Source: Paraphysomonas bandaiensis (taxonomy: Eukaryota > Protista > Chrysophyceae). Taken from it: a stretch of 8,907 nt of DNA. The notes beneath the pieces are model-generated. The model was not told where the DNA came from, did no database searches, and saw only the letters and a program-made list of their open reading frames with translations. This document shows positions 1-7,947 of the stretch, one piece after another; position 1 is the first letter of the stretch; every line of letters starts with the position of its first letter. Position numbers and translations under genes: made by a program. The stretch spans positions 1 to 8,907 of the forward strand of contig CBFFRP010000635.1 of NCBI GenBank assembly GCA_965644295.1, written 5' to 3'.

Positions 1-769
1 ATTATAACTCACAGATACAATCATGTATTAAGCTGAATCCTAATACTGAGTCTCTTGTATCTTGTACTTTCTTGGCGCTTTTCTTGTGGTGCCTCTCTCT
101 CCGATTCTCCTTCTGTGGACCTTGATTTCTCTTTCTCAGATGATGAGATATGTATCTTGCAAAAGAAGTTATACTGAAATGAATGGGGAGACATATTTAT
201 CACATCTGTAACTAATTGGTGGTGTTTCCAGTTTCCAGAGTCAGTGCGTCATATATAAAAGTCTTATTATTAGCAATAGGCGTCGAGAGTGAAGTGCCTT
301 CAAATCCAAGTTGTTATTTTCTGATACAAGGACTGTAGATGCGAGTTGTACCTTCAAATATATAAAAGTTCCAATAAAAGATTTCAGTTTACATATTACA
401 TATCTATTTCTCTACTTTGAGTTAGCTCTTCCGCAACTTATTATCCCAAATCACTATTTCTATTTGTTATTCTGATACCAACTACGCCTATCCTGCAAGC
501 ACGCTACTACGCAGTCAAATATTATACTCTAGCTAATACATCACTACCCCTACCTCCTACACGATCAACTATATATTCCACAGGATACAAAACTTAAGCT
601 GACAAATATATTTTTTGACATGAATCGCAAAATTGTACCACAGCCGCAGTGACATTATTCTGGATATAATTAAACACGTGGAATGCTCACACAGGGCTTG
701 GATTATCTCCCGCAAAGGAGGTTTGTTGCGGAGGCAGGTGATGATATATATAGTGCAACAGGAATATAA

Positions 770-1494
770 CTAGGAGTTGCTGACAGATCGTAGGGCGGAG
801 TCAAACGCTGATACCCAGGCCGTGAGCTCATCAAGTGTGTCGCACCGAAATCTCCAAGTGCGCCGATCATCCTCTTCTCTCTCAGGCTGAACATGAGTAA
901 ATACATCAGATGTAAGTGCAAAATAACATTGAAATCACAACTATCGAGCAGATGCCAGATATGATTGCACACAGCAACAGCTCCCATAAGGAATTGCAAC
1001 TTCGAATAACAGCAAAATACCTTTAGCTCAAATTCATGCGGAGGATGTCCATCAACAGAGAGGAGACTAAGCTCATACCCGATGATACTAATTGGGCGAT
1101 TTTTAATGCTCTTAGACGGATCCGCCTCGAAATCCTGCACACTATTATTACTTCTACCCATGAATAATAACTATTATCACCTCACGGTTCTTATAGTAGT
1201 ACATATCTGTGGCCTGTAGTGTATTTTAGACAACGAAAAGATTACATCACAAATACGTGTACATGTTACACACCTTAAGAACAAAGTAACGACGAGACCA
1301 CTCGGTACTAGAGAGCATACTCTTCGACATGCCCATTTTAGAGAGATATCCTGTTGTAAATAACATAATTACTACTACAGCGCAATACGCAGTCCTGTGT
1401 CATTAGTGAAAATTAAATGAACTTCACGCCCGACGGAGTATTTGTTCACATATCTTGTCATCACCATGACGAGCATTATACCTTCCATCCATAT
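770..1494 (-). other. PH domain-coding portion of the gene (end of exon 5 to exon 9)
   Basis: PH hallmarks appear after splicing: beta1 MEGYLSK, beta2 WSRRYFVL, beta3 MYYYK, beta7 WRFRCDT, and a C-terminal helix ELTAWVSAF with the invariant Trp. Confidence 0.9.
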
Positions 1495-2910
1495 ACGATT
1501 ACTTGCGGGAGCTATAGCTACATTTGCACTGGCCGTAGACATCATGGAGGGCTCTCTGCTCAATTCAGAACCAGCTCGAGAATCCCTGAATAATACTCAA
1601 GTCAATGGGGTTGAACGCGATTACAATAACTAGGTAGAGGTGTTGAAAACATACAATGCAACCAACACTGCACTCAATGTTTATACTCGTCTTGCATCGA
1701 TTCAAAAATCAACTTCGCTTAATGCATCACAATTACTTACTGCTTCATTCGAGATGTCATTCGTGAAAGGATAGATTGTTTCTTCTTATCTTTATCACTT
1801 GACGCTGCAGTGCTAACAACTGTTCCCGAGGTTCCTTCCATATCAGGGCGATCTCTCTCCCCTGTTGTCCTAAGAGGCGTCATTGATCTGTATTCGTTAT
1901 GCAGTGCTGTAAACGTTCACTAGTCTGTATAAATATACCACGCAGTCTATAAATATATTTACTACTATATAAATGTTTAACCACTAAAGTAAATATATAG
2001 TGTAGTACTTTCACGCTACCCGGACAGAGCATATAGTAGGTTGAAATACATACCAAAAACTAGCCAATGGGTGTTGTGATGAGAGCACAAATACCAAAAT
2101 TATAAAAAGTATAGATAAGACTGCTGATGTTTCCGAGTTATCATTTTAACAATGCAAACTTACATGCTCGTTTCGGGTCCTACATCACTCTGCACACCAT
2201 GCATGGGGTTCTGATCAATGCTGGGACTGTGCTTCGCGACGTCACTACCTCCGTCGCTATTGCGCCATTCGATATCGGGCTCAATGAATTTAAATCGATT
2301 ATAGATGCGCAAACAGTACTTATACCAGTATACTGCTCCTACCATTAGGACAGCTGTGCATACTGATGAAGCATAAGTTTTCATAACGACCCATGTCGTT
2401 GCGAGTGTCATACATTGAAATGCAATCAAGGACACAATAAAGGAAACAAATATTGCTGTTTTTTCCGCGATCATTCCTTTAACGGCCCTTACCATAGAAC
2501 TGCGTGATAATATATTCCAATTACATACAATATCATTAGAGCGACACTGACTTACCCGGACGGGCCACGGAGTGCTAAATTAGGCCCATATATGTTGGCA
2601 AAGGTTGTCGTCAGCACACAATGAATTGATGCTGCCATCGAAATACTGGTTGACAGCCAAAATATGGCCCGCCATGCTTCATTAACCGTAAAAGCCTCTA
2701 CATCAAGTCCAGTTAAGGCGCCAAGAGTAAATCCAGCTATGAGCGCAGCCTGGGTCCCGAAGCTAGAAAAAGTTGTAACATAATAATTCATTTCTTGTTG
2801 GCGAATGGCGAGTAATTGCTGGTTAGCCTACAAACATCCAATAAAACTTGCTATAAACAATTCGGAGAACACACCTCCTGAATTAATGCAAGTTGCTCGG
2901 CTCTCAACAT
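770..2910 (-). CDS. Spliced 9-exon gene, complement(join(770..886,1021..1134,1181..1213,1274..1350,1482..1585,1741..1887,2164..2499,2556..2827,2875..2910)); 411-aa four-TM (Orai-like) membrane protein with C-terminal PH domain
   Basis: All 8 introns are GT..AG (47, 56, 276, 155, 131, 60, 46, 134 nt in transcript order) and phase-compatible. The exons total 1236 nt and give a stop-free frame from ATG 2910 to TAG 770. Translation: MLRAEQLALIQE|ANQQLLAIRQQEMNYYVTTFSSFGTQAALIAGFTLGALTGL...GPNLALRGPSG|SMVRAVKGMIAEKTAIFVSFIVSLIAF...YWYKYCLRIYNRF... then linker, then ...IWMEG|YLSKMGMSKSMLSSTEWSRRYFVLK|ATDMYYYKNRE|DFEADPSKSIKNRPISIIGYELSLL...HEFELK|PEREEDDRRTWRFRCDTLDELTAWVSAFDSALRSVSNS*. Four hydrophobic segments lie in exons 2-3. 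The boundaries of linker exons 4-5 are the least constrained. Confidence 0.88.
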
Positions 2911-3659
2911 TGTGCTAAGGTATCAATAAAATTAATCAGCTACTAATTAGTTCTAAGGATTAAGTAGATTAAGTTCCAGCAAATTAAAGGTAATATGCAT
3001 TCAGGAAGTATAAACTCGTAATCTCGAGAAAGGCATGGAGCGATTATTGCTCAAGACAAAACATCTCTGATGATGTAGATGCATGATGTTGATGCGCTGT
3101 GTATCGTCCTGGATATCAAAATGTAATCTGCTGATGATGTAGACAACAGATGATCTGCTGCCGGTGACTTCTGGTTTCAAACACTGGTCAACAAAACCAT
3201 GTCCTTCCCTTTTTTCAGTTTGCATTTTCAGTCTTTGTCACTCCATATCTCTACTCATACAAAACCATCCACACGTATCAGCATATCCTCAAGTTCATCT
3301 TGCTCTGCTCTTCCAAATTCTTGAAATTGTTGTGGGGTTTGAGCTAAATACCGCTCCGTTTTGTCCCTCACATTTCACCGCTCTTGCAACTGATATTCCA
3401 CGATCCCAGCCAACAGAGACAGACTTCAAGTGATGGGAAATGGTGTGAATGATGCGTATTGTGAAAGTAGCGACATCTTACAGTTATATATCACCTCCCG
3501 TATGCTTCATTATTGTGAATTTCACACTTATAGATCTCTCTGTCACATGTGTACTGCACATATACACATCTTAATTACATACATATTACACAAACGTATA
3601 TATATATGTGTTTATGTCATGTCTCTGTCATATGTATACTGCGCACATAAAGTGTATAT

Positions 3660-4145: not shown

Positions 4146-4308
4146 CTGTAAAGCGTTGTAATGTTGATTTGGATGCAGTTCGTGAGCATAGTTAAAGATA
4201 TAGGGTTCTATGTAGCGATCAACTAGACGATATTCCACAGAGACATAAAGTTGATCACTTTTGGATTGAAATCATGTAGCTGGTGCATCAATTCTTGGAC
4301 CTCTGTAC
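4146..4308. repeat. 163-bp inverted repeat, left copy (partner 6803-6965)
   Basis: ctgtaaagcgttg...ggacctctgtac is the reverse complement of gtacagaggtcc...caacgctttacag, with one mismatch seen. Confidence 0.95.
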
Positions 4309-4398
4309 AAATATATTTTTATATTTATTATTGTTCTAACTCGCAATAATTATATGCATATTGGGCAGTTACGGTTATTCACAGAGGGTAGGCTGCAG

Positions 4399-4790
4399 TA
4401 TATGGTACGCAATAGTTTAATTCGTACGTGTGTACTGGTCTATATCAACTCTTGACATATTCGGATGGTGAACTACCTTAATTAACTATATATGAAGTCA
4501 CACAGTAATAAAATTGTACTCAACATCTCTCATTATTCTTTGATATTCGTCACAATTATTTTCTCTCAACTACCAAACAATATTATCAGATCTTATATGG
4601 TACGCAATAGTTTAATTCGTACGTGTGTACTGGTCTATATCAACTCTTGACATATTTGGATGGTGAACTACCTTAATTAACTATATATGAAGTCACACAG
4701 TAATAAAATTGTACTCAACATCTCTCATTATTCTTTGATATTCGTCACAATTATTTTCTCTCAACTACCAAACAATATTATCAGATCTTA
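4399..4790. repeat. Head-to-tail tandem duplication, 2 x 195 bp
   Basis: tatatggtacgcaatag...ttatcagatct occurs at 4399-4593 and 4594-4788. One difference was seen (C4462 vs T4657), and there is a TA microhomology at the junction. Confidence 0.95.
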
Positions 4791-5539
4791 GATAGCCACG
4801 ATCTTACACAGTCACAGTATTTCAGTTTCACTGCTATAATTCTCATCCTATCTTTAGTTCAAGTAATACTGTACTCACTACTGCATTCTTCAAGTAACAG
4901 CCATAATTCAGATACCTTTGAAATGCAGCTTCCAAATGCTTACGAGCAGCAAAACTCATCCCTTTCATTCGATAAGTAGTATTAATTAATAATATCGTCA
5001 ACATCAATGATATTACATTACAATAATGTCCTTAATTAGATCTCTAGTCATTTCAATTAATAGCATGCATATAATTCTCGCGAGTTAGAATAATATTAAA
5101 TATTAAAAATTCTGAGTTGGACACAGAAAGATTGATGCAGTCCTCCAAGAAACTGAAGAAGCGAAAAGTTGAGATATCAAGGTAACTATGAGCAAGGCTC
5201 TTCCATTTTTCCCTCCGAACAATTTCAACAAGCTACGAGAGAATAGTGATGCAAAATCTCTAAATTCGGTATGAGAGTTATGCGTTTTTCGTGTTCACTT
5301 CGGTCAAGTAATATAAGTTTTGCAGATTACATACAAGCTCAGTACACTACAAACAATAGTCAATCCGTCATCTTGGTAGATGTTTTGCTGTTTCTAGTAC
5401 GGAGCAGGGCCTGGTAACCGTTAATGGCCCATTAATGGTAGTCCTGTTCCCGGCAATTATAATGGCCGTTAATGGCCATTAATACCTACTAACTTATAGA
5501 GTAGATAATACCGCTCATAATAGATAGTGTGGTGCTCCC

Positions 5540-7452: not shown

Positions 7453-7947
7453 TTAACCTTTCTTGAACCGCTTCTTCTGATTCTTCTCAACTTCATTTGA
7501 AATGCTCCTCTTTTCCCCTGTGATAGTTTCTTCATGGAGTTTAAAGAGCTTTGTAGATAACGCTTTTGTAAATATGTCGGCCGCCATATCCTTAGTCGAT
7601 ACATGAATCAATTTGGCTGTAGGAAACCTTCCATTTACGTGTTCCCGAACCCAGTGGTACTTTATCTGAATATGTTTTGATCTTTTGTGATAGACTGGAT
7701 TTTCTGACAGATCTTTTGCACTCTTGCTGTCCATGAAGAATGGGTCGTCAATGCGAGTCCTACTGTAGCTCTCGTAACACCCCCCGTAGCCACACCAGTT
7801 CTTGCATGGCCGCATATTCAGCCATATACTCGGACTCCATACTGGAAGTTGCAACTGTAGTCTGCAGTTTGGACTGCCATGCGATTGCTCCAGCACATAA
7901 GAATACAATATAACCGGTAGTTGAACGTCTCGTTAGTATATCACCTG
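7453..7947 (-). pseudogene. Ty1/copia pol RNase H domain fragment, frameshifted
   Basis: Frame A GDILTRRSTTGYIVFLCAGAIAWQSKLQTTVATSSMESEYMAEYAAMQELVWLRGVLRELQ* shifts near 7745-7770 into frame B PFFMDSKSAKDLSENPVYHKRSKHIQIKYHWVRE...VSTKDMAADIFTKAL. Both are diagnostic copia RNase H motifs. Confidence 0.93.

Follow-up and report, generated by a model that had tools for sequence, protein, structure and literature searches.

The stretch of DNA analysed here (the window) is a whole contig of 8,907 nucleotides from the chrysophyte Paraphysomonas bandaiensis (GenBank assembly GCA_965644295.1, contig CBFFRP010000635.1). Its minus strand carries an expressed Paraphysomonas gene, with a coding region that runs from position 2910 down to position 770 and specifies a membrane protein of 411 residues built from two modules. 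The N-terminal module, made of four long transmembrane (TM) helices, is very probably a divergent relative of the Orai calcium channels, and the C-terminal module is a PH domain. The gene structure, its transcription, the identity of the domains and the conservation of the family are described first, followed by the functional reading that they suggest.

A nine-exon gene transcribed as a single mRNA

Reading the minus strand of positions 600 to 3100 gave a frame of 1,236 nt spread over nine exons, corresponding to 411 codons and a stop codon. The ATG is found at position 2910 and the stop codon at 772-770, and another in-frame stop codon (2925-2923) lies upstream of the ATG. All eight introns follow the GT..AG rule and measure between 46 and 276 nt. 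Exon 1 (2875..2910) encodes residues 1-12, which form the start of a conserved cytosolic N-terminal helix running on into TM1; residues M1, A4 and L9 are each at least 90% conserved. Exon 2 (2556..2827) encodes residues 13-102 plus two nucleotides of the next codon and comprises the N-terminal helix, TM1, the outer loop, TM2 and the beginning of the hairpin motif described below. TM3, TM4 and the start of the linker are encoded by exon 3 (2164..2499; residues 103-215, the last in part). Intron 3 (1888..2163), which is 276 nt long, separates the TM module from the linker and the PH domain. Exon 4 (1741..1887) encodes linker residues 215-264, a low-complexity stretch rich in Ser, Thr and Lys and modelled with a predicted local distance difference test (pLDDT) score below 50. 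Exon 5 (1482..1585; residues 264-299) completes the linker and supplies the first strand of the PH domain, which continues over exons 6-9 (1350-1274, 1213-1181, 1134-1021 and 886-773).

RNA contigs from three separate studies were compared with the window. X1 and X4 are labelled with the organism, their RNA type being an automatic guess, and X5 is a polyA metatranscriptome of marine origin. Each of the three sets showed all eight exon joints in its transcript contigs, including joint 2875|2827 between exons 1 and 2, and none of the eight was present in a colinear DNA contig (X16). Because joints 2164|1887 and 1741|1585 were seen in X1, X4 and X5, and because a single X5 contig spans exons 5, 4 and 3, the exons for the TM helices and those for the PH domain are parts of one mRNA. 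A reading made earlier from the sequence alone (hereafter the sequence-only reading) had proposed a spliced frame of nine exons and 411 residues, and had pointed to 2163-1888 and 1740-1586 as the places where the TM and PH exons might turn out to belong to separate genes. Both introns are spliced out in all three RNA sets, and the proposed frame is the one that is transcribed. The transcript reaches at least to position 600 in its 3' untranslated region (UTR) and at least to position 3100 in its 5' UTR. One X1 contig covering exons 1-3 runs about 226 nt past position 3100, which could correspond either to a 5' UTR of more than 400 nt with several upstream ATGs or to a merger with a neighbouring transcript.

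P0187, a database protein matching the product of this gene, served as the query for full-length analyses, and the exons were searched singly. The exon translations align exactly and in order on P0187 (411 aa), exon 1 falling on its residues 1-12, and the remaining gaps are closed by the four split codons. The sole mismatch is a Pro in the window at the place of Ser195 of P0187, in the disordered linker. P0187 and a second protein, P0155, are each encoded by a complete open reading frame (ORF) on a single transcript contig, and the 90% cluster of P0155 includes a protein of MMETSP1103 with taxon id 36769 (Paraphysomonas), the chrysophyte here being marine, colourless and phagotrophic. These two proteins reflect the use of alternative acceptors of intron 3 located 18 nt apart (AG 1889-1888 and AG 1871-1870), both of which are in-frame: joint 2164|1887 gives the form of 411 aa (P0187) and joint 2164|1869 the form of 405 aa (P0155), with a difference of six linker residues. 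The joint of the shorter form was detected in X1 and X4. Another protein of 411 aa, P0153, was considered as the product of the window and rejected, as it shares only about 78% identity and is thus a paralogue or an orthologue.

Intron 3 is also the sole intron for which unspliced colinear contigs were found over most of its length (1858-2192, in X1 and X4); in the interior bins of the other introns the depth was zero. If retained, this intron would bring a stop codon (2162-2160) right after exon 3, giving a four-TM protein of 215 aa devoid of linker and PH domain. The unspliced contigs could also come from pre-mRNA or DNA carry-over, and contig depth is not quantitative.

A four-helix module very probably related to Orai at the superfamily level

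The AlphaFold2 model of P0187, built with a family alignment of 72 sequences, showed a pLDDT of about 97 over residues 1-175, with long helices at residues 2-52, 62-99, 104-141 and 144-172. The core of TM1 (2708..2767; residues 33-52) could be placed on Drosophila Orai by a hidden Markov model (HMM) alignment. The TM2 helix (2567..2680; residues 62-99) contains a near-invariant His81, and TM3 (2498-2385) and TM4 (2378-2292) correspond to residues 104-141 and 144-172, respectively. Beyond TM4, residues 179-290 form a linker of about 110 residues of low complexity, with a pLDDT below 50. As read from the sequence, positive charges border the N-terminus, the hairpin at 99-110 and the segment following TM4, and the loop at 53-62 is acidic; this charge distribution fits cytosolic N- and C-termini, as in Orai.

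The most conserved element of the family is the tip of the cytosolic TM2-TM3 hairpin (2493..2587; residues 93-105), which reads G-P-N-L-A-L-R-G-P-S-G-S-M here and G-P-x-L-A-L-R-G-P-x-G-S-M in the family. Its residues G93, L96, A97, L98, G100, P101, G103 and S104 are each at least 90% conserved, the hairpin turns at residues 100-103 in the model, and intron 2 (2555-2500) splits the motif. Other near-invariant residues are R21 and E24 in the N-terminal helix, and E115 and F130 in TM3.

A search with exon 2 identified 607 clusters (50% identity) at E <= 1e-3, of which 118 had E <= 1e-10, including proteins of Paraphysomonas and Prymnesium. Most full-length members (350-550 aa) carry a Pfam PH domain, and the neighbours found in the ESM-Atlas are mostly haptophyte. 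The next relative, P0152, comes from MMETSP0103 (taxon 37642, Paraphysomonas imperforata), and P0001 likewise belongs to P. imperforata. These two proteins, together with P0037, P0085 and P0182, share with the window protein the N-terminal start, the TM motifs, the hairpin motif, a linker of variable sequence and the C-terminal PH domain. Public labels of such proteins are merely "hypothetical protein" (NCBI) or "PH domain-containing protein" (UniRef), as for P0037 of Prymnesium parvum (KAL1499815.1), and recognition of the Orai module would improve the annotation of calcium signalling in chrysophytes and haptophytes. The sequence-only reading had described four helices, a low-complexity linker and a PH domain, and the model and the Pfam match agree with this architecture. 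The TM1 string and the hairpin motif are found as it quoted them, the motif being the hallmark of the family, and the protist proteins with this motif that it mentioned do exist.

The relation of this module to Orai was assessed by profile and by fold. A profile of 70 family members, compared with 177,635 sequences of the PDB, gave six matches with E < 0.01, every one a Drosophila Orai sequence (6aki being the best, with E 5.8e-4), and the next match had an E-value of 0.31. The alignment between the family profile and Orai consists of two colinear stretches, TM1-TM2 and TM3-TM4. Pfam Orai-1 (PF07856) was matched by 27 of the 70 family members at E <= 1 (best E 3e-7), and no other family recurred in more than six members. 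Two members score above the 25-bit cut-off of Orai-1 over profile positions 7-154, P0085 with 28.6 bits and P0182 with 26.1 bits, and both share the N-terminus, the hairpin motif and the PH domain of the family. For the window itself, exon 2 alone matched Orai-1 with 16.4 bits and an E-value of 0.0077, in register with profile positions 19-76. In the nearest feature clusters of the ESM-Atlas (scores 0.96 and 0.95), 11-34% of the members carry Orai-1.

Fold searches were done with the model of residues 1-200 of P0001, a relative with 75% identity (pLDDT 88.5). With Foldseek, the best 11 matches in the PDB were all Orai chains (probability 0.98-1.0, E from 9e-3, TM-score by target 0.56-0.73), followed by a sharp drop in probability. 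VIA-align, which is independent of Foldseek, placed the Orai chain 4hkr_A first of 48,161 chains, with a Z-score of 11.0 over 150 residues and all four helices.

Several results pull in the other direction. The score of the window protein itself for Orai-1 (exon 2) is below the 25-bit gathering cut-off, no Orai-1 match was found for full-length P0187 in a Pfam scan at E <= 1, and a pairwise phmmer search with residues 1-180 against the PDB did not find Orai. In addition, unrelated helical bundles reached a Z-score of 10.9 in VIA-align, so that Orai does not stand above them and the evidence from the fold alone is insufficient. These results would suit a convergent four-helix bundle unrelated to Orai and joined to a PH domain, akin for instance to the four-TM part of plant ankyrin proteins of PGG type, and ankyrin-PGG (TM-score 0.68) and giant-virus (TM-score 0.65) proteins are indeed shape neighbours of the module. 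We consider convergence very improbable, as Orai was the only family to emerge from independent sequence-profile tests, all four helices are covered colinearly by the matches, the Foldseek top 11 consist solely of Orai, and no PGG match appeared in Pfam at E <= 1. We thus regard residues 1-175, with high confidence, as a divergent member of the Orai superfamily, and because the window protein stays below the Orai-1 cut-off and does not retrieve Orai in a pairwise search, the relation holds at the superfamily or profile level. The Orai fold proposed in the sequence-only reading is supported by the profile of the family, by Pfam matches of its members and by the monomer model of P0001. Of the two Pfam families that it had named, Orai-1 is recovered in P0085 and P0182 and falls under the cut-off in the window protein itself, and PGG (PF13962) is absent from every Pfam scan at E <= 1.

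A PGG identity was rejected on this basis, the sole link being the ESM-Atlas shape neighbour. Weak Pfam matches to TMEM18, DUF3983, APG6, MFS and FA_desaturase were isolated, non-recurrent and under the cut-off, and were discarded as noise. Concerning the shape neighbours themselves, one cluster of 201-aa proteins comes mostly from giant viruses (Nucleocytoviricota; the TM-score of 0.65 holds both ways), and with the plant ankyrin-PGG proteins this suggests that the fold may be common to more than Orai.

The module has the same order and spacing of four long helices, the cytosolic termini and the cytosolic TM2/TM3 hairpin extension of Orai (PF07856; Drosophila structures 4HKR, 6BBF, 7KR5 and 6AKI), and both share the TM1 core L-x-x-G-F (L95, G98 and F99 of Orai1). 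Unlike Orai, the window protein has the distinctive hairpin tip, and unlike animal Orai it has a disordered linker and a PH domain where the TM4 extension binds STIM. Two other Orai relatives can be compared with it. Jiraiya/TMEM221 is likewise a four-TM protein derived from Orai and lacking Ca2+-binding residues (PMC7016017), but it is restricted to animals and has no PH domain, and no Pfam Jiraiya match was listed in any scan of the family proteins. The "divergent" Orai clade of diatoms (PMC11085791) groups stramenopile Orai relatives outside the plant and animal type in hosts without STIM, as here; according to that report its members retain a Glu at the place of Drosophila E178, and a PH domain is not mentioned.

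Orai pore positions, predicted self-assembly and the PH domain

The HMM alignment places T37, L41, G44, F45, G48 and G52 of the window protein at R91, L95, G98, F99, V102 and E106 of human Orai1. Among 69 aligned relatives, position 41 (L95) is Leu in 64, position 44 (G98) is Gly in all 69, and position 45 (F99) is Phe in 66. Position 37, corresponding to R91 of Orai1 and K163 of Drosophila Orai, is Thr in 62 of 69. Position 48 (V102) is mostly occupied by small or polar residues (G37, S10, N7, T7, A4). At position 52, corresponding to E106 and to Drosophila E178, Gln predominates (Q40, G9, S6, A5, T3, N2) and Glu is found in none of the 69. TM1 of the window protein thus shows a G44-x3-G48-x3-G52 face, with D54 and E56 just beyond it in the outer loop, and the places of Orai1 R83 and K87 are taken by Val and Ser. 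His81 of TM2 is present in 64 of 69 sequences and falls, in the gapless HMM alignment, two residues off H206 of Drosophila (human H134), the histidine that acts as a brake in TM2 of Orai. In Orai1, L95, F99 and V102 form the hydrophobic gate, the V102A/C/G/S/T variants are constitutively open, and G98 and F99 rotate on opening (PMC7825772). Judged from the alignment, the family keeps the hinge and the gate core and carries "open-type" residues at the place of Val102, without either of the charged rings.

Since neither the filter glutamate (G52 here, Gln in most relatives) nor the basic residue of the inner pore (T37 at the place of Arg91) is kept, the protein is not a canonical calcium release-activated calcium (CRAC) channel, and its function as a highly Ca2+-selective, store-operated channel of this type is unlikely. 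The loss of both residues could even indicate that the Orai fold has been kept for a purpose other than conduction, as for Jiraiya/TMEM221, which derives from Orai without its Ca2+-binding residues (PMC7016017). The protein would then be a membrane anchor or regulator that acts as a contact-site protein or scaffold, its PH domain linking it to a second membrane or a patch of lipid. The highest conservation in the cytosolic hairpin tip rather than at the pore mouth, and a long flexible linker followed by a PH domain, would suit such a tether. This alternative seems less likely to us, because the 69 aligned sequences show strong conservation of the L-x-x-G-F core that faces the pore and of a polar Thr/Gln ring, the paralogues at loci C430 and C457 of the same genome keep the filter Glu, so that the family as a whole looks channel-competent, no Jiraiya match was obtained in the Pfam scans, and a multimer model has the faces of TM1 packed about one shared axis.

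In this model, four copies of residues 13-175 gave an ipSAE interface score of 0.73 (0.73, 0.69 and 0.73 in individual runs), whereas none of three controls scored above 0.00; agreement between runs extended to at least 96% of the contacts, and the partner pLDDT was at least 78. In the calibration of the ipSAE mark, 21 of 30 solved homo-pairs and none of 23 single chains passed, the figures for eukaryotes being 17 of 29 and 0 of 30. Because only one of the seven eukaryotic cases without an older solved relative passed, the four-copy result may stem from Orai structures that the model had already learnt, and the model also differs in copy number from the native hexamer. The tightest contacts between copies were TM1-TM1 contacts at residues 25, 29, 32, 33 and 36 of the sub-sequence, which correspond to T37, L41, G44, F45 and G48 if the cut piece is numbered from 1, and contacts of the TM4 end with the TM2 end of a neighbouring copy were listed as well. 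The predicted TM1-TM1 contact face would be the face expected to line an Orai-type pore.

The PH domain extends over residues 295-410 (776..1494; exons 5-9). Residues 297-405 matched Pfam PH (PF00169) with 56.4 bits and an E-value of 4.7e-15 (cut-off 25.1), in agreement with the sequence-only reading; the exon-wise Pfam search had given a sub-threshold E-value of 0.0084. The model shows seven strands and a C-terminal helix, with a pLDDT of 87-97. By sequence, the nearest solved structures are PLEKHA7, PLEKHA5, PLEKHA4 (PEPP1), PLEKHA6 and SKAP55. By fold (Foldseek), they are PLEKHA5/6/7, PEPP1 and SKAP55, with Akt, dynamin and Grp1 in addition. The best fold match was 7kjz, the PH domain of PLEKHA7 with inositol tetraphosphate (TM-score 0.82, root-mean-square deviation 2.8 Å). 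This search gave 237 PDB matches at E <= 1e-3, and the best 50 listed were all PH domains or PH-containing proteins. The window domain shares with PH domains of the PLEKHA/SKAP/Akt type (7KJZ, 1UPQ, 2DKP, 1U5D and 1H10) the seven-strand sandwich with its C-terminal helix, a conserved Trp and the beta1-beta2 basic residues. It differs from them by an identity of only 20-26%, by a Ser at the [K/R] place of the signature and by its attachment to a channel-like membrane module.

Basic residues conserved in the PH domains of the family are found at positions 303/304 (K303/304), R318, R319, K332, R334, 381/382 and R387. The phosphoinositide signature K-Xn-[K/R]-X-R is only partial: K303 and R319 are present, and the [K/R] place is occupied by Ser317. 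Across the family, position 317 is E22, K13, D10 and S6, and of 71 sequences, 65 have a basic residue at position 318 and 56 at position 319. Lipid binding by this domain is plausible from these residues. Many PH domains do not bind lipids specifically, and the domain might instead bind a protein (e.g., a small GTPase) or fold onto the TM2-TM3 hairpin or the N-terminal helix as an autoinhibitory plug of an Orai-type channel. The incomplete signature, in which many relatives have Glu or Asp at the place of Ser317, would agree with this, and the near-invariant hairpin tip and the N-terminal helix (R21, E24) could offer a docking surface. We find this alternative unlikely, given that the nearest solved PH domains are those of phosphoinositide binders (PLEKHA7 with inositol tetraphosphate, PEPP1, Akt and Grp1) and that several basic residues of beta1-beta2 and beta3-beta4 are conserved.

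STIM, paralogues and a possible mode of action

STIM is the only known activator of Orai and is confined to animals and their close relatives, and Orai is nearly pan-eukaryotic. The absence of STIM outside holozoans has been reported (PMC7016017, PMC11085791), as well as the expansion of the largely pan-eukaryotic Orai family in Emiliania (PMC7016017). Stramenopiles possess canonical and "divergent" Orai proteins and lack STIM, and their activator is not known (PMC11085791). A six-frame search of the 62.6-Mb assembly for the SOAR domain of STIM (PF16533), one of the surveys suggested with the sequence-only reading, found none (best E 0.62). Neither PMC11085791 nor PMC7016017 mentions a PH domain, and full-text literature searches found no published description of an Orai-PH fusion, of Orai in Paraphysomonas or of Orai with PGG, which does not prove that none exists.

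The family profile matched at least 10 loci in this genome (669 contigs, of which the window is C635). At no fewer than three of them, C67, C386 and C371, TM exons are followed by PH exons in the same order as here; at some other paralogue loci, no clear PH domain was detected with the family PH profile. The linkers of paralogues are unrelated in sequence to that of the window gene, and the filter residue varies, with Glu at C430 and C457, Gln at C67 and Gly in the window gene. Three further loci (C66:45760-46673, C374:18539-19298 and C348:136494-137104) exceed the Orai-1 cut-off of Pfam by themselves and do not belong to the family with the hairpin motif. The C66 copy has a Glu eight residues past the G-F pair of TM1, which is the spacing of the Orai filter Glu. 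With the family PH profile, no PH exon was found downstream of these three loci within the stretches fetched.

Taken together, these data suggest the following mode of action. Residues 1-175, by homology, would probably come together as a ring, with TM1 (T37, L41, G44, F45, G48 and G52) turned towards the central axis and forming an ion pathway. The disordered linker of about 110 residues would tether the cytosolic PH domain to TM4. The PH domain would probably bind an anionic lipid or a phosphoinositide of the same or of an apposed membrane, and this contact could position or regulate the pore without STIM. Because the filter Glu and the basic inner ring are absent and a small residue occupies the place of the Val102 gate, a less selective pore, open by default and under the control of the PH domain, would be more likely than one of CRAC type. 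We give a probability of about one in two to this reading of the protein as a STIM-independent, TM1-lined oligomeric pore that is placed or regulated by its PH domain and is not Ca2+-selective in the CRAC sense. Counting against it are the sub-threshold and empty Orai searches and the VIA-align near-tie reported above, the two missing charged residues of the pore, the partial signature of the PH domain, and the copy number and possible memory effect of the multimer model. The STIM-independent, phosphoinositide-regulated channel of Orai fold that the sequence-only reading had raised as a possibility agrees with the relatedness to Orai and with the failure to find STIM; the canonical filter Glu and Arg91 are missing, and a Ca2+ channel is not implied.

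More tentatively, the whole family could represent a widespread group of protist STIM-independent channels of the Orai superfamily, in which the channel's own PH domain, by reading a phosphoinositide, places or gates the pore. Its Glu, Gln and Gly filter subtypes might then differ in ion selectivity, the Gly52 copy of the window being a non-CRAC pore, poorly selective or not conducting Ca2+, and retention of intron 3 might add an unregulated form lacking the PH domain. The presence of a domain of lipid-binding type where animal Orai binds STIM offers a testable alternative to a store sensor, namely control by membrane lipids. In addition, the natural variation of the filter (Glu, Gln and Gly), with small residues at the place of Val102, constitutes a ready mutational series for the physics of the Orai pore.

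Two minor observations concern other sequences. The stretch containing the C66 locus (L011) has, next to its Orai locus of canonical type, long tandem repeats of 12 nt (2939-3161 and 4179-5284), whose two strands translate as (T-Y-I-H)n and (M-Y-V-C)n, respectively. In the window, Pfam searches of the other long ORFs gave no match at E <= 0.01; these include an ORF of 151 aa on the minus strand (7453-7908). It ends with K-H-I-Q-I-K-Y-H-W-V-R-E-H-V, and we take this C-terminal stretch to resemble the C-terminal part of a Ty1/copia-type retrotransposon polyprotein.

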